Notes under the pieces: model-generated | The model's input: the letters and a program-made list of their open reading frames with translations, nothing else | What the model was told of the DNA's origin: nothing | The model's database searches: none | Part shown: positions 6,100 through 49,181 of the stretch, piece after piece | How positions within the stretch are numbered: the first letter of the stretch is position 1 | How the letters are laid out: the number at the start of each line of letters is the position of its first letter | Made by a program: the position numbers and the translations under genes | Assembly (NCBI GenBank): GCA_977017575.1 | Contig: CDRNVI010000194.1 | Location: 3,742-67,741, forward strand | DNA: 64,000 nt | DNA from: Paramoeba atlantica | Lineage: Eukaryota; Protista; Discosea | Reading direction: 5' to 3'

Positions 6100-9000
6100 G
6101 CACTCTCCCCACCCGAGAAGTCCTTCGTTTAGAAGAAACAGAGGTGCTCAAAGAAGAGCTTGAGGAGCTTGAAGAGCTTGAGGACTTGGAAGAGGAAGAA
6201 GACTTCTTGGTTGATTTAGAGGTTGATGGTTTGGAGGTTTTCGATGACTTAGAGGAAGAGGAAGAGGAAGAAGACTTCTTGAGTAACTTGGAAGTTGATG
6301 ATTTGGAGGATGATGACTTAAAAGAAGATGATTTAAAAGGAGATGGATTCAGAGGGTGTTTCTGATGATATCTTTTGATTTGTTTTGAAGCATCAATTTG
6401 TAAAACATGGATTCATTTAGCATCAACTTTTCAGTAGTGTTTGAAATGCACTCAATAATAAAGTTTTCCATTTAAATACTTATGCTTAAGGATTTCCTTC
6501 ACTTTAAAATCATAACCATCATCATTTTCAACAATCTTTTTAGGTGCTAGCTCTGAATTAACAATAGATATTTCATTTGATTCAAGATGCAGAGTAATCT
6601 TGTACTGAACATGGAGTTTCTTTAAGTTCTGAACATTTTGGATTTCTGAATTCTTCTCTCGTTTGAGTTCTTGAATCTGGTAACTTCCATTTTTAAGATC
6701 CTCCACAACCACATAAATCTCTTGGTAGTAATAGGGTCTGTACTTCTTCACAATCTCTTTTCCTTTTGATTTGTTTTTCTTCAACACTTGATCACCAACC
6801 TTCAACACAGTGTATGTTCCTTCATTTGCTTTGTCATATCATTGTTTTTATTTCACAGCCACTTTCTCTCTCTCCTCTCAGACCCAATTAATTACGCCCT
6901 CCCTCTCAGTTTGTAGCTTCTTGATGTAGTCATCAATCAGTACCACTGGTTTGTTCACAGAGCTGAAGAGAGAATCGATTGGCATAATTGGATGTCTCCC
7001 AAAGTGAAGATAAAAAGGTGTGTAATCAATCGAGGAGGAACAAGAAGTATTGAAAGCAAATTCCACAAGAAGTAAGAGAAGGTCCCAATCGTCTGCATAT
7101 TTATCAACAAATGAGCGAATGATTGATTCTGTAACTTTGTGGGAACATTCAACATGGCCATTACTTTTGGAGTTGTAGGGGGCAATAAAAGTTTGTTTCA
7201 TTCTGAGAAGCTGGGTCAGTTCTGCAAAAATTTGATTTGCAAATTTTGAACCATTATCTGTTACTATCTGCAAAGGCATTGAATTAACACAAATATACTG
7301 AAGTAAGGCTTCAGCAGAGGCTTTGGCAGAGGGATCTGGAATTGCATACAGACATATATAGCCACTAAAGTTATCAAAGATAGCTAAAATAAAAGAATTC
7401 CCACGAGCAGTGACTTTTGGTCCCTTTGTACAATCCAGGTGGAGTAAAATTCCAGGATAAGAAGCCATGTAAGGGTTTAAATCAGATGTCAATGTCTTTG
7501 TTTTCGAGTTGATCGCACAATTAAGGCAGTGGTGATAGTAACCTTTGATCGCAGCACTCATACTAGGAAAATAATAGGAGACAGCAATTGCATCATAAAG
7601 TCACTCAAACTTGTGGTGTCCAGAGATTAGATCTGAATGATAAGTGTCAAATACTGTATTCCACAAGCTCTGGGGCAGAATTGCAGGTGGGAGACAACCA
7701 GCAGCTGTAGTTTCATCCACTTTCCTCAAGATTCTGGATTCATCAACCCAGTACTTGTGAGCAGTTTGTTGGAGTGCCTGAAGATAGCGCTTCCTCTTAG
7801 ACAAGAGACCATTAATCAAGTAGTTAATAATCATTGAGCAAAACTTATCTTTCCTTTGAGCCTGAGCAAGGTAAAGAAGTTCAACTAAAACCTGATCAAT
7901 GTTATCCATATCCACTTCAACATTTTCAGAACTTTCTTTTGCTGTGGAAAGTGGCAGAGGCAGTGATTGAATAGGAGGAATGTCATGAATTTCCAGCTCA
8001 CTGATTAATTCAATTTTTTCCAAAATGTCATTTTGTCTTGAGAGGATATGGGCTTTTCTTGAAGAAGATTGTTACAAATCCACCAACTCTTCAAACCAAC
8101 AAGTCACATAATCCTTTGAAGTGGCCTTATCATGATATCCAATGTACTGGTGGCTTAGAGCATCAGGGATTGCCATCAACTTTCCAGGTTTGTGAATGAC
8201 CTTTGGGTGATATTCTAGAATTCGAGCAACCCAATCACACAGCATATCATGGTTCAGTACTTTCTGTTGACCTGTTTTAAATACAGATTTGAGAGATTTG
8301 CAATCACAGAACACAATAGGATTTCAACCACAGACATAATACTTGAAGTTGTTTAATGCCCACAGGATTCCAAGGCCCTCCTGCAGAGGATTAGTATACT
8401 TCTGCTGTGTCTCTGTGAGTGTTCAAGAAGCATACTCAATAACTCAGTGGTGGCCATCTTGATCCATCTGAGTGAGAATTGCTCCAAGACCAAGCTTGCT
8501 GGCATTAACATGGATAAAAAATTCTTTTGAAAAGTCAAGATAGGCCATACAGGTTTCAGATGTTAAGAGCTCCTTTAAGAGATGTATCTCCTTGATGGAT
8601 TCTTGGGATAGTGAAAACTTCTTTGGATCCATCACTTTGGCTTTTCTCAAGTGTGTTGTTAAACTAAATGAATGAGGGATGAACTGTTTTAACCAAGTAA
8701 CCATTTCCAAAAATCTCTCAACTTCCTTTGGAGTAGTTGGAAGTGGGTAATTCTAGATTACCTCAACTTTTTTCGGATTTGGCTTCAAACCATCCTTTGT
8801 TGCAATAAATCCAAGAATTTCAAAATTTGGCTTGCAAAATGAGCACTTTGCTGGTTGGAGCATTAAATCATTGTCCCTCAATCTTTGGAAAATTTTTGTC
8901 AGATCAGCCAAATGTTGTTCAAATGTTGAGCTGTAACAAAGGATATCATCAATGTAGGCAAAACAACATTGCCAAACCAGACCACTCAAGACCATTTCAA

Positions 9001-10902
9001 TAAACCATTGTTGTGTTGTTGGAGCGTTACATAACCCAAAAGGCCTTGAAAGAAATTCTTAGAGACCATATTTGCTGGTAAAGGCAGCCTTTTCAATGTC
9101 TCCTTCTCTGATTGGGATCAACCAGAAAACCTCAAACAGGTCAATAGAGGAAAAATAAGAAGAACTACCAAGTGCAGCTAAGATTTCATCCATATGGAGT
9201 AGTGGATAAGAGTCCTTCTTTGTTTTTTCATTTAGGTGACAGAAATCCACACAAAACTGAACATTTCCATTCTTCTTGTCCACCAAGAGAATTGGAGCAG
9301 CCCAAGGAGAGTTAGATTTTCTAATCACTTTCCTTTTCACCATCTTGTCAATATGTTTCCATATGATGCAGTCTTCAACAGGTGTGGTTCTACAGGGTTT
9401 TGCTCTCAAGGGTGAACCCTCTGCCTCAATTGGATGACTCGTTGCTGTGGTTCTAGTAATTGGACCTTCTCACTTCTCATCATCCCACAAGTCTTGGAAA
9501 GAAACCAACATCTCCACTAATTGTATTTTCTGCCTATCATTCAATTCAGCATTATTCAAACCAAATTTCTCATATGCTTCTTTGAATTTACCAGGCAGAT
9601 CTTTTTTATGTGCAGTAGACTTGTTTTGGGTGGTGATGTGAGTAAGCAATTGTATCACAGATGAGTCACAATCGAGGTCAGGGTTGGGGTTTCTGGTGGA
9701 TCGATCAGATTTGCCATTCTGATGATCATACAACTTCTGTCTCTTTCATTTAGGTTTTTGAAATAAATCCTCATCCTCAATCATTTTCTCAAGCCATGGT
9801 CCAGCAAATGCACAGAAATAATTGGCACCATTCTTTGCATTAACTGATTTTGTGCAAGGTGGTTGTTTCTTGGGTACAGATTTTTGAAGACAAGATTCAA
9901 TCAAAAAGTGTTTCAAGAGTTGAAGAAGCTTAGTGTTTTCGACATTATGGTCATTAAGCTGATAAACTGTTCCAACTTTGAGATTTTTCTTCACTTGGAC
10001 CTCAGTCTCAGAATGATTCATCACAAGAACATTCAGTGTGTTGTGTTTTTTACCTTGCTCGATTGTAATCAAGCCAGGAAGGAATAACAAACTCTCTGAT
10101 CCAATTGATGGAAAGAAGAATCCTTCAAGTGACAATGCATGGCTGTTCAGTGTTAGTGGAAGAAACACTGATGATCTCAGAGGGATTGCCTTTGTCTCAG
10201 CCAAGAGTACCAAGGTCTTATCTCGCCTCTCTACATTGATGTAGAAATCTGAATCTATGACTTGAGGAAGGGTGATGTTGAGCTGTGCCGAATTTGCCTG
10301 GATGCATCTCCAACCTTTCCATGTTAAATGACCATCACTGAGACCTAGGCGACATCGTTTCATGGCACTGAAGCCAATCAATGTTTGAATAGGAAGGTCA
10401 TCAATAATGAAGAACTAGAGTCCTTGGGAAAACCTCTTTCCAACTTGACCACAGTATGAATCTCTTCATTAATCACAACTTTGGTTGAGTTTCCCACTTT
10501 GACTTGAAGCTTGTCAGCTTGCCATCAGTTCAGGATCTCAAATCCAGGATGTGAAAGTTGCTGATGACTGATCACATTGATACCAGATCCCATATCTATA
10601 CAAGTAGTAATTGCTAATCCACCTGCCTGAGACACAACTTCAAATGCACAACCAATATCCTGGCTTTTTGCATTGATTACTAAATTCAGAAGAACATTAA
10701 TCACATGATCTGAAGAAAGGTTGGTATGGGATGATGGATCAGCCTGAACATGAACATCAAAGTGTTTCAGAGGTTCTTGAACATGAGTGTTGGATTGACT
10801 CAGAGGTTCTTTGAATTCAGTTGAGCAACTAGATGAAATTGAAGAATACAATACAATGGGCTCAGAGCAGTAGAAAAACCTAATGAGAAAACTGGTGCTC
10901 AA
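6100..10902 (-). pseudogene. pol: Fragmented pol of Gypsy-A copy 1
   Basis: ORF pieces 10525-10902 (TCIDMGSG), 9059-9409 and 8753-8995 (RT, YIDD), 8444-8710 (RH), 6878-7561 (IN, IVTDNG), 6452-6808 (chromodomain start); many stops and frameshifts. Confidence 0.93.
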
Positions 10903-11504
10903 AGTTCAAAAAAAAAGAAAAGTCGCTTGCTCAAAAAACCAATTGGTGGAAAAATAGCCAACTCAAAAAGAAGATAAATGATCAAAAGTAGAAGATCGGT
11001 TGTTGTGAGGAAACTTAGCCTTCAGGAAAAAACCTCACCAGAATGTTTGTTTGTGAAAACAAGACACTGTTGTTGTTTCAATTCAAAGAACAAATGTTCA
11101 ATCTCAGTATTGAAAGTGAGCATGAGTTCCGAAAATCAAAACTGGTATCACCAATGAACACATCTACTTTGGTACAGACTAAAGAAGGTATGTCAGAAAT
11201 ATGTTGAATGGACAACTGAAGAGTGGTCCTCAGAGGTCTCACGAAAAAGCAAGAAACTTTCTGATGACATCATCAATGGTGTTTTTTATTGAGTGTTTCT
11301 AAAAAACCTGAAAAAACCAACTTTTTTGTGTTTTTTTTTTTTTTTACAAAACTTTGGGCCCAGAGTTTTGGGTGAGGGTGAAACCTAGAGTTTTTTCATT
11401 TTGAAAAAAAATTCAAAATTTTGAAAATGAGATTGAAATGGAAAATTGAAAGTTTATTTTAAACAAAAAAAAGAGAAAAATGGAAATAAAAAGGTTGTTG
11501 AAAT

Positions 11505-15520: not shown

Positions 15521-16108
15521 CACAGGGGTGAGCTCAAGCAGCACTTGCAATCGTGGCATTTTTTGGGGTTGAAGTGTGCACATGAGCAATGTGCGCTACT
15601 CTGAAGACACTTGGCTCTCTGCTCTATTCGTTTGATCCGACTCTTGATCTTCTCCAAGTCAATTTCCAATCTCCTTCAAGTCAACCCTTGGTCTCCTCCA
15701 AGTCGACCTTCTGTGAATCTAAATAAAGAACACCATTGATGATGTCATCAGGAAGTTTCTCACTTTTTTGTGAGACTTCTGAGGACCGCTCTTCAGTTGT
15801 CCATTCAACATATTTCTGACACACCTCCTTTAGTCTGTACCAAAGTAGATGTGTTCATTGGTGATGCCGGTTTTGATTTTTGGAACTCACGCTCACTTTC
15901 GATATCGAGATTGAACATTTGTTCTTTGAATTGAAACAACAACAGTGCCTTGTTTTCGTGAACAAACATTCTGGTGAGGTTTTCTCCTAGAGGCCAGGTT
16001 TCCTCACAACAACTGATCTTCTACTTTCGATCGTTTATCTTCTTTTTGAGTCAGCTATTTTTCCACCAATTGGTTTTTTGAGCAAGTAACTTTTCTTTTT
16101 TTTTAACT

Positions 16109-19100
16109 TTGAGCACCAGTTTTCCCATTGGGTTTTTTTACTGCTCTGAGCCCATTGTATTGTATTCTTTGATTTCATCTAGTTGCTCAACTGAATTCAA
16201 AGAACCTCTGAGTCAGTCCAACACTCATGTTCAAGAACCTCTGAAACACTCTGATGTTCATGTTCAGGCTGATCCATCATCCCATACCAACCTTCCTTCA
16301 GATCATGTGATCAATGTTCTTCCAAATTTAGTAATCAATGTGGAAAGCTGGGATATTAGTTGTGCATTTGAAGTTGTGTCTCAGGCGGGTGGATTAGCAA
16401 CTACTGCTTGTATAGACATGAGATTTGGTATCAATGCGATCAGTCATCAGCAACTTTCATGTCCTGGATTTGAGATCCTGAACTGATGGCAAGCTGACAA
16501 GCTTCAAGTCAAAGTGGGAAACTCAACCGAAGTTGCGATTAATGAAGAGATTCACACCGTGGTCAAGTCGGAAAGAGGTTTTCCCAAGGACTCTGGTTCT
16601 TCATTATTGATGACCTTCCTGTTCAAACATTGATTGGCTTCAGTGCCATGAAACGATGTCGCCTAGGTCTCAGTGATGGTCATTTAACGTGGAAAGGTCG
16701 GAGATGCATCCAGGCAAATTCAGCACAGCTCAACATCACCCTTCCTCAGATCACAGATCCAGATTTCTATGTCGACATAGAGAGGCGAGATAAGACCTTA
16801 GTACTCTTGGCTGAGACAAAGGCAATCCCTCTGAGATCATCAGTGTTCCTTCCACTAACACTGAACAGCCATGCATTGTCACCTGAAGGATTCTTCTTTC
16901 CATCAATTGGATCAGAGAGTTTGTTATTCCTTCCTGGCTTGATTACAATCGAGCAAGGTAAAAAACACAACACACTGAATGTTCTTGTGATGAATCATTC
17001 TGAGACTGAGGTCCAAGTGAAGAAAAATCTCGAAGTTGGAACAGTTTATCAGCTTAATGACCATGATATCAAAAACACTGAGCTTCTTCAACTCTCAAAA
17101 CACTCTTTGATTGAACCCTGTCTTTGAAAATCTGTACTCAAGAAACAACCACCTCATACAAAATCAGTTAATGCAAAGACTGGTGCCAATTATCTCTGTG
17201 CACTTGCTAGACCATGGCTTGAGAAAATGATTGAGGATGAGGATTTATTTCAAAAACCTAAACAGAAGAGACGGAAGTTGCACAATCATCAGAATGGCAA
17301 ATCTGATCGATCCACCAGACACCCTGACCCTGACCTTGATTGTGACTCATCTGTGATACAATTGCTTACTCACATCACCACCCAAAACAAGTCTGCTGCA
17401 CATAAAAAAGATCTGCCTAATAAATTCAAAGAAGCATATGAGAAATTTGGTTTGGATAATGCTGAATTGAATGACAGGCAGAAAATACAATTAGCAGAGA
17501 TGTTGGTTTCTTTCCAAGACTTGTGGGATGATGAGAAGTGAGAAGGTCCAATTACTAGGACCATGGCAATGAGTCATCCAATCAAGGCAGAGGGTCCACT
17601 CTTAAGAGCAAAACCCCGTAGAACCACACCTGTTGAAGACTACATCATATGGAAACATATTGACAAGATGGTGAAAAGGAAAGTGATTAGAAAATCTAAC
17701 TCTCCTTGGGCTGCTCCAATTCTCTTGGCAGACAAGAAGAATGGAAATGTTCAGTTTTGTGTGGATTTCCATCACCTAAATGAAAAAACAAAGAAGGACT
17801 CTTATCCACTACCCCATATGGATGAAATCTTAGCTGCACTTGGCAGTTCTTCTTATTTTTCCTCTATTGACCTGTTTGAGGCTTTCTGGTTGATCCCAAT
17901 CAGAGAAGGAGACATTGAAAAGGCTGCCTTTACCAGCAAATATGGTCTCTGGGAATTTCTCTTGATGCCTTTTGGGTTATGTAACACTCCAGCAATACAA
18001 CAATGGTTTATTGAAACAGTCTTGAGTGGTCTGGTTTGGCAATGTTGTTTTGCCTACATCAATGATATCCTTTGTTACAGCTCAACGTTTGAACAACATC
18101 TGGCTGATCTGGCAAAAATTTTCCAAAGATTGAGGGATAATGATTTGATGCTCCAACCAGCAAAGTGCTTGTTTTGCAAGCTGAATTTTAAAATTCTTGG
18201 ATTTATCACAACAAAGGATGGTTTGAAGCCAAATCCAAAAAAAGTTGAGGCAATCCAGAATTACCCACTTCCAACTACTCCAAAGGAAGTTGAGAGATTT
18301 TTGGGAATGGTTACTTGGTTAAAACAGTTCATCCCTCGTTCATTCAGTTTAACAACACACTTGAGAAAAGCCAAAGTGATGGATCCAAAGAAGTTTTCGC
18401 TATTCCAAGAATCCATCAAGGAGATACATCTCTTAAAGGAGCTCTTAACATCTGAAACCTGTATGGCCCATCCTGACTTCTCAAAAGAATTTTTTTATCC
18501 ATGTTAACACCAGCAAGCTTGATCTTGGAGCAATTCTCACTCAGATGGATCAAGATGGCCACCACCAAGTTATTGAGTATGCTTCTCAAACACTCACAGA
18601 GACACAGCAGAAGTATACTAATCCTCTACAGGAGGGCCTTGGAATCCTGTGGACATTAAACAACTTCAAGTATTACATCCGTGGTCGAAATCCTATTGTG
18701 TTTTGTGATTGCGAATCTCTCAAATCTGTGTTTAAAACGGGTAAACAGAAAGTACTGAACCATGATATGCTGCGTGATTGGGTTGCTCAAATTCTAGAAT
18801 ATCACCCAAAGGTCATTCACAAACCTGGAAAGTTGATGGCAATCCCTGATGCTCTAAGCCACCAATATGTTGGATATCATGATAAGGCCACTTCAAAGGA
18901 TTATGTGACTTGTTGGTTTGAAGAGTTGGTGGATTTGGAACAATCTTCTTCAGGAAAAACCCATATCCTCTTGAGACAAAACGACATTTTGGAAAAAATT
19001 GAATTAATCAGTGAGCCAGAAATTCGTGACATTCCTCCTATTCAATCACTGCCTCTGCCACTTTCCACAGCAAAAGAAAGTTCTGAGAATGTTGAAGTGG

Positions 19101-37935: not shown

Positions 37936-40900
37936 TTAAAAATGAGAACTAGAATAACAAGGAGTTTCAGGAGTCATAACACACCCTCCATTTCCTGTTT
38001 CAGAACAACATGATGGAAGTGGACAATTGATGTAATTGTGACTCATATCAAGAGTGGCAACCCTACATAACCACTTATCACCTTGAATTGGTCCACTCAA
38101 AAAATTGTAACTCACATTCCTATTTTTTCATTCAAATCAAAAAAAAATTCACTTTTTCAGCAAATGAGAAAAAAAAAGAAGAAAAGAGCATGAGATACAC
38201 ATAGGTAGGAGCAAAGATCTGTTTTCCTTCAGGAAATGACCCTTTCAGTGAATTTGATGATAAATCCCTACCACAAGAACCCCATGATCAGTTTTATCAA
38301 TTCTTCAAAATCACAAAAAAAGAAACAACATACAAGGTAAACCGAAAGTTGTCAAAAAGTTCAGATGGAATTGTTCCACTCAATGAATTCTGATTCATAT
38401 ATCTGAAAGATTAAATTTGTTTGAATAAAATATCCAGAGACAAGAGAAAAAATGAAAAATACAAGTTTGCCAATTCAGTGAGGGCAGTAAGTTGGGTTGG
38501 AATTGTTCCAGATAATGAGTTGTACTGAAGAAACCTGGTTTTTCAAAAAGTAAAATAGAAAAATTCTTTGATTAATTTTTTGATAATGATGTGGTGTCAG
38601 AAAAGAGAGGATTTTTAAACAAAGAGAATCCTTTAAAATAAGATCTGTAACAAAAAGGGGGAAAGAGTAGAAGAGGAAGAGGTAAAAAAATTACAATGAG
38701 TTGAGAGATTTGGATCCAAAATCAGATGGAATTGTCCCAGTCAAAGAGTTATCATTAAGCAATCTACAAACCAAAATAGTTGGTGGGAAGAGAGGAGAGA
38801 ATGAGAGAAATTAGAATTGAAAGAATGCAAAAAAAAGAAAAAAGAAAAGGAGAGAACAAGGAAACCAAATGGGGCATGGCAAAAATTTCGGGTGGAATCG
38901 TGCCATTCAGTTGATTATAGCCCAGCTCCCTTGAAAAAAGAATCATGGAAGAAAGAAAAAAAACAAAAATGAAACCCACATACACTTGTTGTGATTTTTT
39001 ACAATTTGCTAATTCTGATGGGATAGTTCCTGTTAATGAATTATGACCTAACGCTCTACAATCAACCCAGATATGAGAAGTTGTTGAAATGAGAGGATAT
39101 TCAAAAAAAAATGGAAGAAAAAAAAAGGGAGGAAAGAGATACAGCCAATAAAATCCACATTCACTCAATTCAGTTGGGATTGTGCCATTAAATGAGTTGT
39201 CCTCGAAATATCTGGATGAAAAAATTACCAATACAGAGAAAGTCAAACAATTAAAATCTTCAGAGAATAATCTCCAAAAAAAAACATGGGAAAGAAGAAA
39301 AATGAAAATTAAAAGAATTTTCAAACATATATCTTAATGTTGTCAGTTTCCCAACCTCTGTTGGAATAGATCCAGTCAGCAAATTCTTAGAAACATCACT
39401 GAAGAGAACAAAAAAAGAGAATTTTTTCTTTAAGTCAGGAGAAAGGGAAAAAAGTAAAGTAATAGGAAAGAAAAAAAAAAAGAAAAATTCAAAAAGAAAA
39501 ATCATACAATATGGTGAGATGGGTAAGGAGTCCAATTTCAGTTGGGAGAGTTCCTGTGAACGAGTTACTCCCAGCAACACTAAAAACAAGAAAGAAAAAA
39601 TATTAATCTCCCAAACAAAATTTGAGCAAAAAAAGAGAGGATTGAAGAAAAAGAAGGGAAGATGCATCAGAGAAGGGAAGAAGAACCAGAATTTAAGTGC
39701 TGAGATTTCAGCAATTTCAGTTGGAATTGTTCCATTGAACATATTTGTTGAAAAGGTCCTTTTCAACAAATAAGTTAACCACCAAAAATGATTCAAGTGA
39801 AAGAGAAAAGGAAATGACAAAAAAAAAGATACAAGCCAGTAACAGATGAAAGCCTTCTCAGGTCAGTGGGAATCGTTCCTGTGAATCTATTCACGTCAAG
39901 GGCTCTATAAATCAAAGAATAAGTTCAAATTTTTTGAATGTGAAAAAAAAAAGAAAAAAATGAGAAGAGAACAAAAATTTCAAGTTCTCAAATTGGATGG
40001 AATGGTCAAAGATATCTCCATGCAAGTCATTGTTAGAAACATCCCTAAGATGATTCAAAAGGTTTAAGTGATTCATTCAGGAGAGAGAGTAGTTCCCCTC
40101 AAAGAAAAATGGAGATTAAAAAGAATGAAAAGGGGAAAGAAGACAAACAAATGTTCAAGGTTTGAGAGTTGGGTTATATCAACTGGAACTGCTCCTGAGA
40201 GTCGATTTGATCTAAGGGCTCTTTGAAAATGATATTTTGATAAGATTAGAAAACCAATATGAACTCATTAGGAGAAAAGAAAATTATCCTCCTCTCCAAA
40301 AATAACAACCATCCAAAACAAAAGAAAAAAAAAGTTAAACAAGAGGGTTAATCGAGAGAGTTCCCCGATTTCAGTTGGAATGGTTCCAGAGATATTATTA
40401 TATCTCAAATCCCTATGGAGAAAGAAGGAAGAAGAGAGAATCAACAAAAAGAGAGACAAGATAAAGAAAAAAAAAAGAAAACATGTCGGTCATATGAAAA
40501 AGGCCCCCAATATCACTTGGAAGAGTACCATCCAATTTGTTCGAAAGCAATTTTCTAAAAAAAATGAGAGATCTGAACGAAAGAAATCTTTTTTCTCTCT
40601 CCTTCTTTCTTGAACAAGAAAGCAAAAAACTTACAAAGATTTAACGTGTGAACTCAAACAGGAAACACCATGCCATCGATTGGAACAAGGATCACCTGTC
40701 ATCCAATTTTTTTTCTTCTCCCAGTTGGGACCATCTGTTGAATCATAAAGACTTTCTAAAGCTGTACACACCACCAAAATCAGTGACAAAAGACAAAGAG
40801 AAAAGAAGAAGAGAAAAAAGGAAGAAAAGAAGGACGAAAGAGAAACCCAATGTCTCGTTGCTTGTTGTTCCTTGGACAATTGGTGCGAAGATCAGAAACA

Positions 40901-41003
40901 ACAAAACAAAAACCTGAACAAGAAAAAGTTTCAAATAATTGGAAGAATTCTTTCTTTCAACTTTCTTTCCACAAACCATTGAAATAAAGAGAAACTTTCT
41001 CAT
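37936..41003 (-). CDS. Secreted plant-type LRR protein, paralog A (multi-exon)
   Basis: Hydrophobic leader (VFVLLFLIFAPIVQG), LRRNT_2-like ALESLYDSTDGPNW...GDPCSNRWHGVSC, repeated 72-nt exons of the LxxNxLsGtIPxeIgxLxxL type, Cys-rich end NCPLPSCC...PCYSSSHF*; no TM or kinase seen. Start codon uncertain. Confidence 0.85.
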
Positions 41004-42368
41004 GTTGGCTTCTTTGTTCCAGAGACCGAGAGAGAAAAAGAGAGAAAAAGTTTTCTTCCAGGAAATCTTCCAGGAAAGATTTTCTGTCCGCACAGCGGAA
41101 AAAAACAGCCGCAAATTCACACATACGGCAAGAAAAGGGACCTTTTGTTAAGGCGATCTTTGTCACCGCTACTTTCTTGGAAGGGAGCTCTCCATTGACC
41201 AAAAAAGGGGAAAAATGGTTTGGTAATTTATCTCGAACGGCGTTCGAGAAATGAACGAGTTTTTCTTTCTGTCCTGAGATGATTCAACAACATCCAGATA
41301 AAGTTTCTTTGTCAAAAGTGGTGGTTGGGACACCTTTCTTAATTTTTCAGGAGGAGGATCACTTGGAAGGTTTTCAGAAATTTCGAAAATTCAAAACCTT
41401 TCAGTTTGTTTCAAGTATGAAAATCTCCCCTTCTTCTCTCCCCTCCTGTTTTCGTTTCCTCATCGAAAATGTTCGGAAAAACGCTTCCTACAAACTGAAG
41501 TTTAGATATCTTGGAATGAATATAAGATGTCCTTTTGCTCAGAAGTGATGGGCACTTCGAGATTTCATGCCCACTTTCAGAACCTTTAAAAAGGCCAAAA
41601 CCCATAAAATCAAACACACAAACAAAAAAATCAAAAAACTAATTCCAACAAATTGTAGAGAATTCCAAAAGGAACCTTGTCATAAAATTACAGCAACTTC
41701 TTGGCAAGAATCGAACACAAAACTGTGGCCACAAAAAACAAGGAATTCAACAGCGAAGAAAGCGGCAAACGCACACAAAAAAAAGAACGAAACTTCGTCC
41801 ACAATAGGGTGTTTCAAATCAACATCGTTTTTTACTGTTGTGTCCGGAAAGAAAAGTTGACGCGGAATTTTATTCACTGAATCAGATGTTTCAGGACCGT
41901 GAAAATGAAATTTTTCACTTCAAGACATTGCGAAAAAAAAGATGGATGCAATGATTGTCATGGCGCGATGATTGTCACAAAGCAACCTATTCGCAAATAA
42001 TTCAAAGAAAGGTTTGGGGAAAGAGGAAAACTAATTCCAAAAACAATTTGATCATCAAAAGTTTTTGATAACTTGAACTCAACAGAGTTTCGTTTTCATT
42101 TTTTTTTTGAGCTGGTTTGATATTTTTTGGAGACATTTTCGGTTTCATTTTAAAAAAGAAAAAAAAAAAAAGAAAAGAAATTAAAAAATAAAATCTTCAA
42201 TTGGATGATTAATTCAACAATATTCTGGTCTGCAACATCAAGCACTGTTTTGCCATCCTAATACAATAATAAGAACAACTTAAACAATTAAAAAGTTCTT
42301 ACAATTTTACTAAATTAAAAATAAAAGTAATCTTTCATTTTTATTATCTTCAGAAACAATCAGCTTTG

Positions 42369-45300
42369 TTAGAAATGAGAACTAGAATAACAAGGGGTTT
42401 CCGGAGTCATGACACACCCTCCATTTCCTGTTTCAGAACAACATGATGGAAGTGGACAATTGATGTAATTGTGACTCATATCAAGAGTGGCAACCCTACA
42501 TAACCAATCATCACCTTGAATTTGTCCACTCAAAAAATTGTAACTCACATTCCTATTTTTTCATCCAAATCAAAAAAGAATTCACTTTTTCAGCAAATAG
42601 GGAAAAAAAGAAGAAAAGAGCATGAGATACACATAGACAGGAGGAGAGAGCTGTTTTCCCTCAGGAAATGACCCTTTCAGTGAATTTGATGATAAATCCC
42701 TACCACAAGAACCCCATGATCAGTTTTATCAATTCTTCAAAATCACAAAAAAAGAAACAACATACAAGGTAAACCGAAAGTTGTCAAAAAGTTCAGATGG
42801 AATTGTTCCACTCAATGAATTCTGATTCATATATCTGAAAGATTAAATTTGTTTAAATAAAATATCCAGAGACAAGAGAAAAAATGAAAAATACAAGTTT
42901 GCCAAATCAGTGAGGGCAGTAAGTTGGGTTGGAATTGTTCCAGATAATGAGTTGTACTGAAGAAACCTGGTTGATTAATTTTTGATAATGATGTGGTGTC
43001 AGAAAAGAGAGGATTTTTAAACAAAGAGAATCCTTTAAAATAAGATCTGTAACAAAAAGGGGGAAAGAGTAGAAGAGGAAGAGGTGAAAAAATTACAATG
43101 AGTTGAGAGATTTGGATCCAAAATCAGATGGAATTGTCCCAGTCAAAGAGTTATCATTAAGCAATCTACAAACCAAAATAGTTGGTGGGAAGAGAGGAGA
43201 GAATGAGAGAAATTAGAATTGAAAGAATGCAAAAAAAAGAAAAAAGAAAAGGAGAGAACAAGTTAACCAAACGGGTCATGGCAAAAATTTCGGGTGGAAT
43301 CGTGCCATTCAGTTGATTATAGCCCAGTGCCCTTGAAAAAAGAATCATGGAAGAAAAAAATTGAAAGAGGGGGGATTTTAATCAATGGGAAAGAAAAAAA
43401 ACAAAAATGAAACCCACATACACTTGTTGTGATCTTTCACAATTTGCTAATTCTGATGGGATAGTTCCTGTTAATGAATTATGACCTAACGCTCTACAAT
43501 CAACCCAGATATGAGAAGTTGTTGAAATGAGAGGATATTCAAAAAAAAAAAATGGAAGAAAAAAAAAGGGAGGAAAGAGATACAGCCAATAAAATCCACA
43601 TTCACTCAATTCAGTTGGGATTGTGCCATTAAATGAGTTGTCATCGAAATATCTGGATGAAAAAATTACCAATACAGAGAAAGTCAAACAATTAAAATCT
43701 TCAGAGAATAATCCCCCAAAAAAAAAACATGGAAAGAAGAAAAATGAAAATTAAAAGAATTTTCAAACATATATCCTAATTTTGTCAGTTTCCCAACCTC
43801 TGTTGGAATAGATCCAGTCAGCAAATTCTTAGAAACATCACTGAAGAGAACAAAAAAAGAGAATTTTTTCTTTAAGTCAGGAGAAAGGGAAAAAAGTAAA
43901 GTAATAGGAAAGAAAAAAAAAAGAAAAATTCAAAAAGGAAAATCATACAATGTGGTGAGATGGGTAAGGAGTCCAATTTCAGTTGGGAGAGTTCCTGTGA
44001 ACGAGTTACCCGCAGCAACACTAAAAACAAGAAATTTGGGAGATTAAAGAAATTTGAGCAAAAAAAGAGAGGATTGAAGAAAAAGAAGGGAAGATGCATC
44101 AGAGAAGGGAAGAAGAACCAGAATTTAAGTGCTGAGATTTCAGCAATTTCAGTTGGAATTGTTCCATTGAACATATTTGTTGAAAAGGTCCTTTTCAACA
44201 AATAAGTTAACCACCAAAAATGATTCAAGTGAAAGAGAAAAGGAAATGACAAAAAAAAAAATACAAGTCAGTAACAGATGAAAGCCTTCTCAGGTCAGTG
44301 GGAATCGTTCCGGTGAATCTATTCACGTCAAGGGATCTATAAATCAAAGAATAAGTTCAAATTTTTTGAATATGAAAAAAAAAAGAAAAAAATGAGAAGA
44401 GAACAAAAATTTCAAGTTCTCAAATTGGATGGAATGGTCAAAGATATCTCCATGCAAGTCATTGTAAGAAACATCCCTAAGATGATTCAAAAGGTTTAAG
44501 TGATTCATTCAGGAGAGAGAGTAGTTCCCCTCAAAGAAAAATGGAGATTAAAAAGAATGAAAAGGGGAAAGAAGACAAACAAATGTTCAAGGTTTGAGAG
44601 TTGGGTTATATCGACTGGAACTGCTCCTGAGAGTCGATTTGATCCAAGGGCTCTTTGAAAATGATATTTTGATAAGATTAGAAAACCAATATGAACTCAT
44701 TAGGAGAAAAGAAAATTATCCTCCTCTCCAAAAATAACAACCATCCAAAACAAAAGAAAAAAAAAGTTAAACAAGAGGGTTAATCGAGAGAGTTCCCCGA
44801 TTTCAGTTGGAATGGTTCCGGATATTTTATTATATCTCAACTCCCTATGGAGAAAGAAAGAAGAAGAGAGAATCAACAAAAAGAGAGACAAGATGAAAAA
44901 AAAAAAAAAGAAAACATGTAGGTCATATGAGAAAGGCCCCCAATATCACTTGGAAGAGTACCATCCAATTTGTTCGAAGACAATTTTCTATAAAAAAATG
45001 AGAGATCTGAACAAAAAAGAAAGAAAGAAATCTTTTTTCTCCCTCCTTTCTTTTCTTGAACAAGAAAGCAAAAAACTTACAAAGATTCAACGTGTGAACT
45101 CAAACAGGAAACACCATGCCATTGATTGGAACAAGGATCACCTGTCATCCAATTTTGTTTCTTCTCCCAGTTGGGACCATCTGTTGAATCATAAAGGCTT
45201 TCTAAAGCTGTACACACCACCAAAATCAGCGACAAGACAAAGAGAAAAGAAGAAGAAGGACGAAAGAGAAACCCAATGTCTCGTTGCTTGTTGTTCCTTG

Positions 45301-45429
45301 GACAACTGGGGCCAAGATCAGAAATAACAAAACGAAAACCTGAACACGAAAAAGTTTCAAATAATTGGAATCATTCTTTCTTTCAACTTTCTTTCCACAA
45401 ACCATTGAAATAAAGAGAAACTTTCTCAT
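42369..45429 (-). CDS. Secreted plant-type LRR protein, paralog B
   Basis: Colinear near-identical copy of 37936-41003 with the same exon structure. Confidence 0.85.
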
Positions 45430-45486
45430 GTTGGCTTCTTTGTTCCAGAGACCGAGAGAGAAGAAGAGAGAAAAAGTTTTCTTCAG

Positions 45487-47742
45487 CCGGTCTCTTTTAG
45501 CACTCTATAAGAAACCAAGAAAAGCTAAAATTTAATTTTAAGGCCTTATTCAAATTGGATTGCAATAAAAGTTTATTTTGAACAAGAAGAACACAGAAAA
45601 CTCATTCGTCTGTTTGAAACACCCCGTCCCTTCAATCCATGGCATCTTGAACATGTGGGTGCATTACATGCCACACAAAGAAGAGTTTTCTCCTTGTAAA
45701 TTTTCGAGGAACAACTGAGACATGAGACCTTTTGAGACTTTTTTCGTCTTTTTCGGGGTTTTTGACTTCTTTCACTTCTTTCACTTTCCTCACTTTCTTT
45801 TTTCTTCTCTCGACGTTTTCTTTTTCTCTCATTTTTTTCTCTGATTTCTTTTTCTTTTTGACATCTCTTCTCTTCTGCAATCTCTTCTTCTTGGACCTCT
45901 CTTTCCTGCCTTGCAATGATATTTAACACATCCAATTCTTCCAAACGAGCAACACAACTCTCACAATCACATCCTTGAATAATTGGTCGAGGGAAAATCG
46001 GATCTGTAGGAAGAGAAGTAGCATATTGCATCAACTGAATTGCAAGATCGCGAAGAAATGTCTCAAAAATGGCTGTCCCATACGAATTCTCTTTTTCAGG
46101 AATTTTATATTTCCCACCCCATTGTTGAAGAGCCCAAATATCCAAATAGAGGGTTAAATGGAGCATTTCAGAGAAAACAATTGAAGAAGATGCAGATCGA
46201 TGAGGGGGAGAGAACCAGGTCATGAATCGATTGAAAGCATCAGAACCAAGCCCAAAGAGACTCGAATATACTGTGTTCACCACCGCCATCTGATTGGACA
46301 AGATTTTCGTTTTTTTTTGTTTTTTTTGTTCAACAGTGAAGCCATTTGAATGGACAGCACGAACACCAAACGACTTCTTGTTACGCTCTCTGTGCCAGTG
46401 CATTGAAATGACTGGACCTGCTTCAGTCACCATGGCAACTTTCTTTGGGAGAACCTTTTTGGTCTTGAGAGGTTCTTCAAGTTTTGAGAGCTTCACTTTT
46501 TTCTCTTTTTTTCCAACTTTCACGACAGCCTTAACATTTTCTTCCTCAATATCTTCTTCATCTTCTCCTTCCTCTCCATCATCATCCCCTTCATCTTCTT
46601 CTTTCTCATTCTCTTTCTTCCTCAGTCCCACAGTATCACCTTCATCAATAATATACGAAATCAATGCTCGCCATTCTCGTTGCCACCACCGTTTGTTCAG
46701 GGAAGTGAAATAAAGAAAATTTTTCTCCTGCAAAAAGGACAATGCAGGACGAGAGGAATAATATGAGTCAAATACCAACCCACTCTCTCCAGGGATCATC
46801 CCCTTTGAAGCCCATTCAAGAATCGATGTTTTCTTTGAGAAAAGGTTGTTGGAATCTTTTGAGGGAAAATCTAGGGGGAGAATCTTGTGGACAAAGGGAA
46901 GAGAGCTTCCATGACATTGAACTGCGCTTTGAATCATCCAGATGACTGGGGTGCCCTTATTCATCCGAATAACATCGCAGTGACCATGGTACTCTTCCTT
47001 TCTCTCATCAAGAATGTTCAAGCAATTTCCAAAATTCACTAATCGAGAGAGATTATCAGTAAAATCAGTTCCCATCAATGAAGTTGGAATTGCAAAAACT
47101 CGTTCCATTTTGGTAAATGCATTCCTCCCTAACAACAATTTCGGGGATTCAGGGAGAGATGGGAAGCGAATAGAGTCATTAAAGGTCTCAGACCACGACA
47201 CACTGTCTTTCCGAACGCATCTGTAGGCGTAGATCCAGATTCGTTGTGCAAGGTAAGCATAAAACCTCTGAAGGGAAATGTACTTCTCATTGACATCTTC
47301 TCGACGATGAAAATATGCATGGCGGATCACCTTTTCTGCTAAGGCAGGAGGGAAAACTTTAACGAACAAATCCGCAGCATTCTGGTGTCAATTTCCAATG
47401 ACAAACGATGGTTGTCGTTTCAGAATCGAAATGGCGTTTTGTGTGAGGCGAAACTTCCGGGAAGAGGGATAAATCGTCCAATCTTTCGTCAGGTCTACTT
47501 TCTCAGACTCCAATGTTGTTCGAGATTTCTTTTTCTTCGTTGCATGTTCCAAAGGGGAGAGCTTTTGGTTGAGCGCAAGTTGGGAACTCATCCTCACCCA
47601 AACAAAAAACAAAAAAAACAAAAAAAAATCATCAATAATTCCTACCTACACTAAAAATATAGTGCAAAGGTCCATACCAATAGCGAATTAATTGTTTATT
47701 TTAGCCTCGCCTGGTTTCTTATAGAGTGCTAAAAGAGACCGG
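45487..47742 (-). mobile_element. piggyBac-like DNA transposon (2256 bp including terminal CCGG)
   Basis: Perfect 31-bp inverted match ccggtctcttttagcactctataagaaacca (45487-45517 / 47712-47742), extending imperfectly to gctaaaa; encloses one transposase frame. Confidence 0.92.
45573..47591 (-). pseudogene. piggyBac-family DDD transposase, 672 codons, one in-frame TGA at 47388-47390
   Basis: ILDERKEEYHG, LVFDSYYSS and YSSLFGLGSDAFNR match the piggyBac IDE / FDNxFTS / YN..MGGVD triad; C-terminal CLSC...CVACNAPTCSRCH Cys-rich domain; MSSQL...IGN*HQNAADLFVK is one frame. Confidence 0.88.
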
Positions 47743-48126
47743 AGAGAAAATAACGCGGGATTTTCTTCACTGAATAGGGTGTTTTCAGGACCGTGAAAAT
47801 GAAATTTTTCACTTTAAAGACATTGTGAAAAAAAGACATGGATGCGAGGATTGGCATGGCCACGAGGATTGTCATGGACACATTGTCACAAAGCAATCTC
47901 TTCGCAAATCATTCAAAGAAAGGTTTGGGGAAAGAGGAAAACTAATTCCAAAAACAATTTGATCATCAACAGTTTTTGATCACAGAGTTTTGTTTTCATT
48001 TTTTTTTTTGAGCTGGTTTGATATTTTTTCCCTACAAAAAATACAAGATGTAGAAAAATATTGAGAAAGACATTTTCGGTTTTCATTTTAAAAATGAAAA
48101 AAAGAAAAGAAAAGAAATATAAAACC

Positions 48127-49181
48127 TTCAATTGGATGATTAATTCAACAATATTCTGGTCTGCAACATCAAGCACTGTTTTGCCATCCTAATACAATAA
48201 TAAGAACAACTTAAACAATTAAAAAGTTCTTCCAATTTTATTAAATTAAAAATAAAAGTAATCTTTTATTTTTATTAAGAATAAAAATGAAAATCAAAAA
48301 AAAAAATCAAAACTTTAGTTTGGAGCTGAATGTTGACTCGATGTTCAATAAGAATTTTGACAATTTCTTCAAAACCATTCTCAGCAGCAAAGTGAAGAGC
48401 AGTCCGCCCCTGCTAACAACAAAAAAGTTTTAAAAAAAGAAAAACAAATCATTGAACAACTGTCTCCCACCCTCCACCACAAATCAAAAAGAAAAATCAA
48501 AACATAATCTTGAAGATCAACATTGGATCCATGTTCAACAAGAATCTTCACAACTTCTTCAAAACCTTTCTCAGCAGCTCTGTGAAGAGGAGTCCATTCA
48601 TTCTTAGAAAAGTTGTTAAAAAGAAGTTGTTAAAAAATAACAAAACAATTCACCACAACCATCCCCCACCCACACAACATCATCAACAAAGAAAAGTGAA
48701 AAATCCAAAAGAAAATCAAAACTTCATCGAGAAGATCAATGTTGGCTCCATGTTCAACAAGAATTTTCACAATTTCTTTAAAACCTTTGAAAGCAGGCCA
48801 ATGAAGAGGGGTCCGCCCAATCTAAACAAAAAGAAGTTTTAAAAAAAGAATAAATCAAAACAACCAAAAAAAAAAAGAAAATGAAAACTTTATCTTGAAG
48901 ATCAACGTCAGACCCAGATTCAACCAGAATCTTCACAATTTCTTCAAAACCTCGAAAAGCAGCAACGTGAAGAGGGGTCTGTCCAGACTTGACAAAAAGG
49001 AGTTTGAACAAAAGAAACAAAACTTCAAAAACAACAAAGAAAAAAGAGAGAAAGAAAGAGTTTCCGAAACCCTGTTGTTTTTGAAGTTCACATTCGTTTT
49101 TTGATTTTGGAGAAGAACTTGGACAAGTTCTTTGTCTCCTTTATAAACAGCATCAAAAAGCTTTTCTTCTTGTTCTTCCAT
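48127..49181 (-). CDS. Ankyrin-repeat protein (about one repeat per exon); 3' end may extend to ~47880
   Basis: MEEQEEKLFDAVYKGDKELVQVLL, GQTPLHVAAFRGFEEIVKILVESGSDVDLQDK, GRTPLHWPAFKGF..., DGKTVLDVADQNIVELI, separated by GT-AG introns. Confidence 0.88.

Follow-up and report, generated by a model that had tools for sequence, protein, structure and literature searches.

Among piggyBac transposons, targeting of TTAA is treated as a defining, and practically limiting, property. Ciliates carry domesticated piggyBac nucleases, PiggyMac and Tpb2, which are piggyBac-type enzymes that act at non-TTAA sites; these are host genes without transposon ends, whereas the element described here is a mobile one with inverted repeats and target site duplications (TSDs). 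For piggyBac itself, integration occurs 'almost invariably' at TTAA, the positions of the active sites in the transposase dimer fix a 4-bp stagger, and the TTAA site is read in the form of unpaired single strands and requires bonding of target base 1 to target base 4 (PMC7351741). A survey of 157 piggyBac elements reported TTAA throughout and ascribed rare exceptions to mutation (PMC5381638), and a recent large mining effort kept TTAA elements only (PMC13461360), so that lineages like the one described below would be invisible to that mining.

Within a 64,000-nt stretch of Paramoeba atlantica DNA (the window), positions 45487-47742 are occupied by a 2,256-bp (2.26-kb) DNA transposon whose ends are perfect reverse complements of 31 nt each (45487-45517 and 47712-47742, CCGG included; CCGGTCTCTTTTAGCACTCTATAAGAAACCA). 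The inverted similarity of these ends reaches 64 nt at 80%, and a 26-nt core of the element end occurred exactly twice in the window and not once in 100 shuffles. The original prediction that TTAA is absent from the ends of this element and that both read CCGG was borne out by the end sequences. Relative to the piggyBac superfamily (T. ni piggyBac, piggyBat), the element has no match to the Pfam model PF13843, its TSD is CNNG/CCGG instead of TTAA, and the repeats of its family begin with T (TCTC, TGGC, TAGC), whereas piggyBac repeats begin with CC(C/T). We nevertheless consider it probable that the transposase belongs to the piggyBac superfamily as a deep branch that is invisible to Pfam, and that the element is a young, recently active, single-copy, autonomous, cut-and-paste transposon with a C-N-N-G TSD. 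The features of the locus are as follows.

41844-41847, no strand: single CCGG at the aligned position in the paralogue without insertion; it serves as a control for the right junction alone.
45487-45490, no strand: left TSD copy, CCGG; the sister copy has CAGG at both sides, and homology between the copies ends just beyond.
45491-45517, plus strand: left terminal inverted repeat (TIR) proper, 27 nt perfect, beginning TCTCTTTTAG; weaker inverted similarity extends to 45550, with 0 chance matches in 100 shuffles.
45573-47591, minus strand: transposase gene of 672 codons, putatively a divergent piggyBac-type DDD enzyme, in a single frame that opens with the ATG at 47591 and closes with the stop at 45573.
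45576-45722, minus strand: Cys-rich zinc finger of PHD-like type at the C-terminus, covering residues 550-598 in the numbering of the 598-aa part, from the family profile compared with PHD fingers in PDB.
46239-46241, minus strand: candidate catalytic codon D377 (numbering of the 598-aa part).
46767-46769, minus strand: candidate catalytic codon D201 (same numbering).
47007-47009, minus strand: candidate catalytic codon D121 (same numbering).
47388-47390, minus strand: in-frame TGA interrupting the gene at codon 68; the sister copy has CGA (Arg).
47712-47738, minus strand: right TIR proper, 27 nt perfect, the inverted-repeat match to the left end.
47739-47742, no strand: right TSD copy, CCGG; homology to the paralogue in the window begins exactly here, and the sister copy has CAGG.

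Collecting all genomic copies by the 31-bp end had been proposed as a check, and the genome of the host (45.7 Mb in 248 contigs) yielded one copy only: searches with the end sequence (≤3 mismatches), the protein and the DNA returned this locus and, beyond it, low-complexity matches. By these searches the element is single-copy in its own genome and has no miniature derivatives there. Metagenome, genome and viral contig collections scanned with protein patterns gave zero matches, as did an exact scan of metagenome contigs with the element end sequence.

The window also contains a local duplication in which one duplicate is unoccupied. Its left block aligns 43000-45484 with 38598-41058 at 94% identity and its right block aligns 47739-48277 with 41844-42346 at 81% identity, and right-flank homology sets in precisely with CCGG, of which the paralogue has a single occurrence. 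Some 785 bp (41059-41843) are found in the first duplicate only and are missing right up to the left CCGG of the element, in agreement with the earlier description of a ~790-bp deletion in the left flank that leaves an empty-site control at the right junction only. Pieces of this ~785-bp stretch are dispersed elsewhere in the same genome. In a third paralogue (L080) homology ends at this same position and CCGG is absent, within an A/G-rich stretch whose ambiguity precludes scoring. The start codon of an LRR gene, placed earlier ~60 bp downstream of the element, was not confirmed: the frame opened by the ATG at 47799 has only 9 codons, and long plus-strand ORFs beginning at this point are absent.

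A word search for the protein led to a contig of another assembly (ENA ERZ24900291 ctg3760l; L027) with a 99%-identical protein fragment, on which a second whole copy of the element lies at 8889-11148, 99.7% identical to the window copy. Homology between the two stops at the element edges, with no shared flanks, and there are four internal differences: a T-run of unequal length in the left repeat, a single substitution, an indel of 1 nt and base 47390. The outer four bases are CCGG on both sides in the window and CAGG on both sides in L027. Because CAGG in the sister copy is direct and non-palindromic, it behaves like a TSD rather than like a piece of an inverted repeat; CAGG/CAGG is the only non-palindromic perfect insertion in our set and the sole direct proof that the inner bases originate from the target. 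Together with the single CCGG in the paralogue, this direct repeat upholds the original view that CCGG is target DNA and that the TIR proper starts with TCTC, and these alignments show the four bases outside TCTC...GAGA to be duplicated host DNA. Perfect 4-bp TSDs were found in the window (CCGG/CCGG), in L027 (CAGG/CAGG) and at two sites of a relative, L076 and L077 (CCGG/CCGG at each).

An empty orthologous site for the L027 copy was not found in the P. atlantica genome, where the unique flanks of L027 are absent and the matches to its flanks are dispersed repeats only, at 89-95%. The element is 99.7% identical between the two assemblies, other shared repeats are only 89-95% identical, and unique flanks are unmatched. 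This suggests either that the element was recently active in each of the hosts or that it passed from one related host to another. The sister contig also holds ZBED/BED-finger RNase-like genes (16491-17924), and ~1.6 kb of it (about 15945-17565), overlapping these genes, matches the P. atlantica genome at 89%; this stretch common to both is probably another shared transposon family.

The target preference was assessed from every family member whose contig shows both ends (n = 6); two of these insertions are the element itself (window and L027) and four are relatives, in which the element boundaries were placed after the pattern was seen. The assemblies with the sister copy and the relatives are ENA ERZ24900291, ERZ27247320 and ERZ2783015 and JGI 3300082556 and 3300082333. 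P0004, P0013 and P0009, on contigs too short for both ends, and P0006, P0016 and P0020, without DNA, were left out of the count. In L026, a 45%-identical relative, the ends start with TCTCTTTTT and the flanks are CATG and CAAG. A 22%-identical relative, P0021, forms a 3.7-kb element with 88-nt repeats that is present on two JGI contigs with different flanks, and both of its sites (L076 and L077) read CCGG-TGGCTTC...GAAGCCA-CCGG, with no direct repeat beyond CCGG. P0068, on a TARA scaffold, has 160-nt repeats and unequal flanks, CCGG and CTAG. The six insertions are thus CCGG/CCGG (three), CAGG/CAGG, CATG/CAAG and CCGG/CTAG (one each), so that all 12 flanking 4-mers are CNNG, 7 of the 12 are CCGG and none is TTAA. 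On the same contigs the background frequency is 0.03-0.09 for CNNG and 3e-4 to 6e-3 for CCGG, and the probability that all six sites are CNNG by chance is about 8e-9. The occurrence of CNNG in all six insertions, compared with a 3-9% background, indicates that the outer C and G are selected. On these counts, CCGG is the preferred and commonest site and not an obligatory one, with the outer C and G alone invariant in the family. Of the CCGG-targeting lineage that had been proposed, the non-TTAA target and the prominence of CCGG were retained, but a strict CCGG target was not, given CAGG in L027 and CATG/CAAG in L026. TSD lengths of 1, 3, 5 and 6 bp and shifted boundaries fail in both young copies. 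Two other arrangements were seen among the relatives: a minus-strand PIF/Harbinger-type DDE_Tnp_4 gene (L026 2517-3578) lies ~10 bp outside the right end of the relative, so that two transposons abut, and the 11-kb contig of P0020 (ENA ERZ26222911) is a head-to-tail array in which a pair of 390-aa and 315-aa genes occurs four times, every ~2.37 kb.

Pfam assigned the 598-aa part of the transposase to no transposase family, PF13843 (DDE_Tnp_1_7) included, nor did PF13843 match any of ten long relatives, and a six-frame PF13843 scan of the P. atlantica genome detected 46 other true piggyBac stretches and not this locus. Searches of PDB sequences with phmmer and with the family profile gave no piggyBac match and returned PHD fingers only. 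The relatives recovered by an exhaustive profile search number only 66, all of them unannotated metagenome or transcriptome proteins. In contrast to Pfam, fold and profile comparison pointed to piggyBac. An AlphaFold2 model built on an alignment of 36 sequences from the family was confident (pLDDT 83, pTM 0.75), and its top Foldseek match was 6x67, a strand-transfer complex of piggyBac (E 8e-8), followed by piggyBat and after it Tn5, such that the predicted structure has the piggyBac transposase fold. The lowest-rmsd rows of a structure search of the ESM Atlas were PF13843 clusters, and language-model features of the protein likewise point to PF13843. With hhalign, the family profile matched one true piggyBac of the same genome at 56% probability (E 1e-4), and the family alignment (A4) matched an alignment of 28 PF13843 proteins (A5) at 94.1% probability (E 1.3e-7, 246 columns), with the LDE and VFDS motifs lining up with the first two catalytic Asp residues of piggyBac. 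The candidate triad is conserved in the family (D121 in 23 of 26 sequences, D201 in 27 of 27, D377 in 29 of 31); D121 and D201 align to piggyBac Asp residues, and D377 was assigned by motif resemblance only. At the C-terminal Cys-rich block, the family profile matches PHD fingers in PDB (E 1.5e-4) and weak Pfam PHD matches were found in the relatives P0007, P0009 and P0016, which agrees with the cross-brace zinc finger of the piggyBac C-terminal domain (PMC5861402). The originally suggested DDD and Cys-rich transposase was therefore recovered in the conserved triad and the PHD-like C-terminus, and its assignment as piggyBac-type is supported by fold and profile comparison but not by PF13843.

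The P. atlantica genome also harbours a PF13843-positive piggyBac family with many copies, repeat tips CGGGTTCCTTCCAGG (CGGGTTCC) and at least 27 ends in the genome. Three of its insertions, listed here, have perfect 4-bp TSDs, namely CAAA, ATAT and CGAT.

L029, C139:308200-312342.
L030, C167:130887-135029.
L031, C139:258975-263117.

This family resembles our element in its host, its 4-bp duplications and its non-TTAA sites, and differs in its clear Pfam piggyBac match (195 bits), its many copies and its unrelated repeat ends; its protein is no more than a remote relative of the one studied here (hhalign E 1e-4). It has no visible site consensus in the three insertions, whereas the family of the element has one, together with a far more divergent protein. 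The TSDs of L029-L031 indicate that non-TTAA piggyBac relatives are a broader feature of this host.

One explanation for the junctions other than a 4-bp duplication is that CCGG/CNNG is the tip of the inverted repeat and the true duplication is the 2 bp outside it. Canonical piggyBac repeats do begin with C (PMC5381638), and the 2 bp beyond the TSD (45485-45486 and 47743-47744 in the window) repeat directly in both young copies, as AG..AG in the window and GC..GC in L027, for which the chance is ~1/256. However, the tips of L027 are direct (CAGG/CAGG) and not inverted, two independent substitutions would be needed in 8 terminal bases of copies that differ at ~4 internal sites, and the paralogue already has CCGG. 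The original prediction had named flanking TTAA in other copies, or an AG repeat outside their CCGG, as evidence against a CCGG target; TTAA is found in none of the 12 flanking 4-mers, and a 2-bp repeat outside the four bases is present in L027 (as GC) but absent in L026, L076, L077 and L078. We consider such a tip very improbable. The duplication may also be 2 bp with element tips of G...C and the same CNNG target, a model that predicts a sequence identical to that of a 4-bp duplication. That 4-bp duplications arise without sequence preference, with CCGG in the window a matter of chance, would accord with the true piggyBacs of the same genome, which sit in CAAA, ATAT and CGAT, and with the sister copy, which is not in CCGG; we regard it as quite unlikely, because every one of the six family insertions lies in CNNG, for which the background is 3-9% per site, and because CCGG, at 0.03% of window 4-mers, is nonetheless occupied both by this element and in two or three relatives. 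A strictly CCGG target, with CAGG, CATG/CAAG and CTAG as rare off-target events or mutated duplications, is a less remote but still doubtful option. Seven of the 12 4-mers and three perfect CCGG/CCGG insertions favour it, and the 'almost invariably' used for TTAA in piggyBac leaves space for rare exceptions (PMC7351741), but three of the six insertions deviate, including one of the two copies of the element itself, and the perfect direct CAGG of the young L027 copy makes mutation unlikely.

A different question is whether the family belongs to Sola or to some other DDD superfamily that is little characterised and makes 4-bp duplications, in which case group-specific targets would already have been described. 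Bao et al. are said to have reported in 2009 that Sola elements have DDD transposases, 4-bp duplications and group-specific target preferences. The RNase H domains of Sola have no Pfam match (PMC5751038), as in this protein. The comparison with Sola was by description: a DDD enzyme, a 4-bp duplication and the lack of a Pfam model are shared with our element, and the first two do not separate Sola from piggyBac. What does argue against Sola is that profile comparison ties the family to PF13843 proteins (94% probability), that the best structural and language-model matches are piggyBac, and that a C-terminal cross-brace finger is a piggyBac feature (PMC5861402); we therefore consider membership in Sola or a similar group unlikely. 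Tn5 and IS4 transposases are set apart from the element by a structural score below that of piggyBac, a 9-bp duplication and a prokaryotic distribution.

For a piggyBac-related enzyme with a C-N-N-G target, a mechanism can be proposed by analogy to piggyBac. A dimeric DDD enzyme would join both 3' ends to the target with a 4-bp stagger, leading to duplication of four host bases; the outer T/A pair of TTAA would be replaced by C/G in this clade, and the two inner positions would be relaxed. We infer that the invariant outer and variable inner bases fit the piggyBac geometry with a C/G pair in place of T/A. We give an even chance to the broader proposal that a natural piggyBac-related clade has swapped TTAA recognition for the G+C palindrome CCGG, or more loosely for C-N-N-G, with the same outer-base pairing logic. 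By duplicating C-N-N-G in place of TTAA, the element illustrates how the choice of landing site has changed naturally within a family of enzymes that serve for gene insertion. With the 4-bp stagger retained and C-N-N-G/CCGG as the site, such a relative puts the question of which residues set site choice within direct reach of testing, and it points to new insertion specificities for genome engineering. If the proposal of such a clade is correct, it would offer an existing alternative in site specificity for the seamless insertion of genes by cut-and-paste, as well as a comparative system for finding target-choice residues. In an AT-rich, CpG-depleted genome, where CCGG is as rare as 0.03% of window 4-mers, the landing places open to the element would also be shaped by such a preference.

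Both whole copies of the element have a damaged transposase gene. The TGA noted originally at 47388 is present in frame at 47388-47390 and, because the sister copy reads CGA there, represents a C-to-T change at a CpG. As judged from the reading frames, the window copy is a dead remnant through this one CGA-to-TGA nonsense change, and the L027 copy is dead through a 1-nt frameshift. In the 46 PF13843 stretches of the same genome, the internal stops of the piggyBac copies are nearly all TGA, a bias that, with the CGA-to-TGA change in the window, fits C-to-T decay at CpG.
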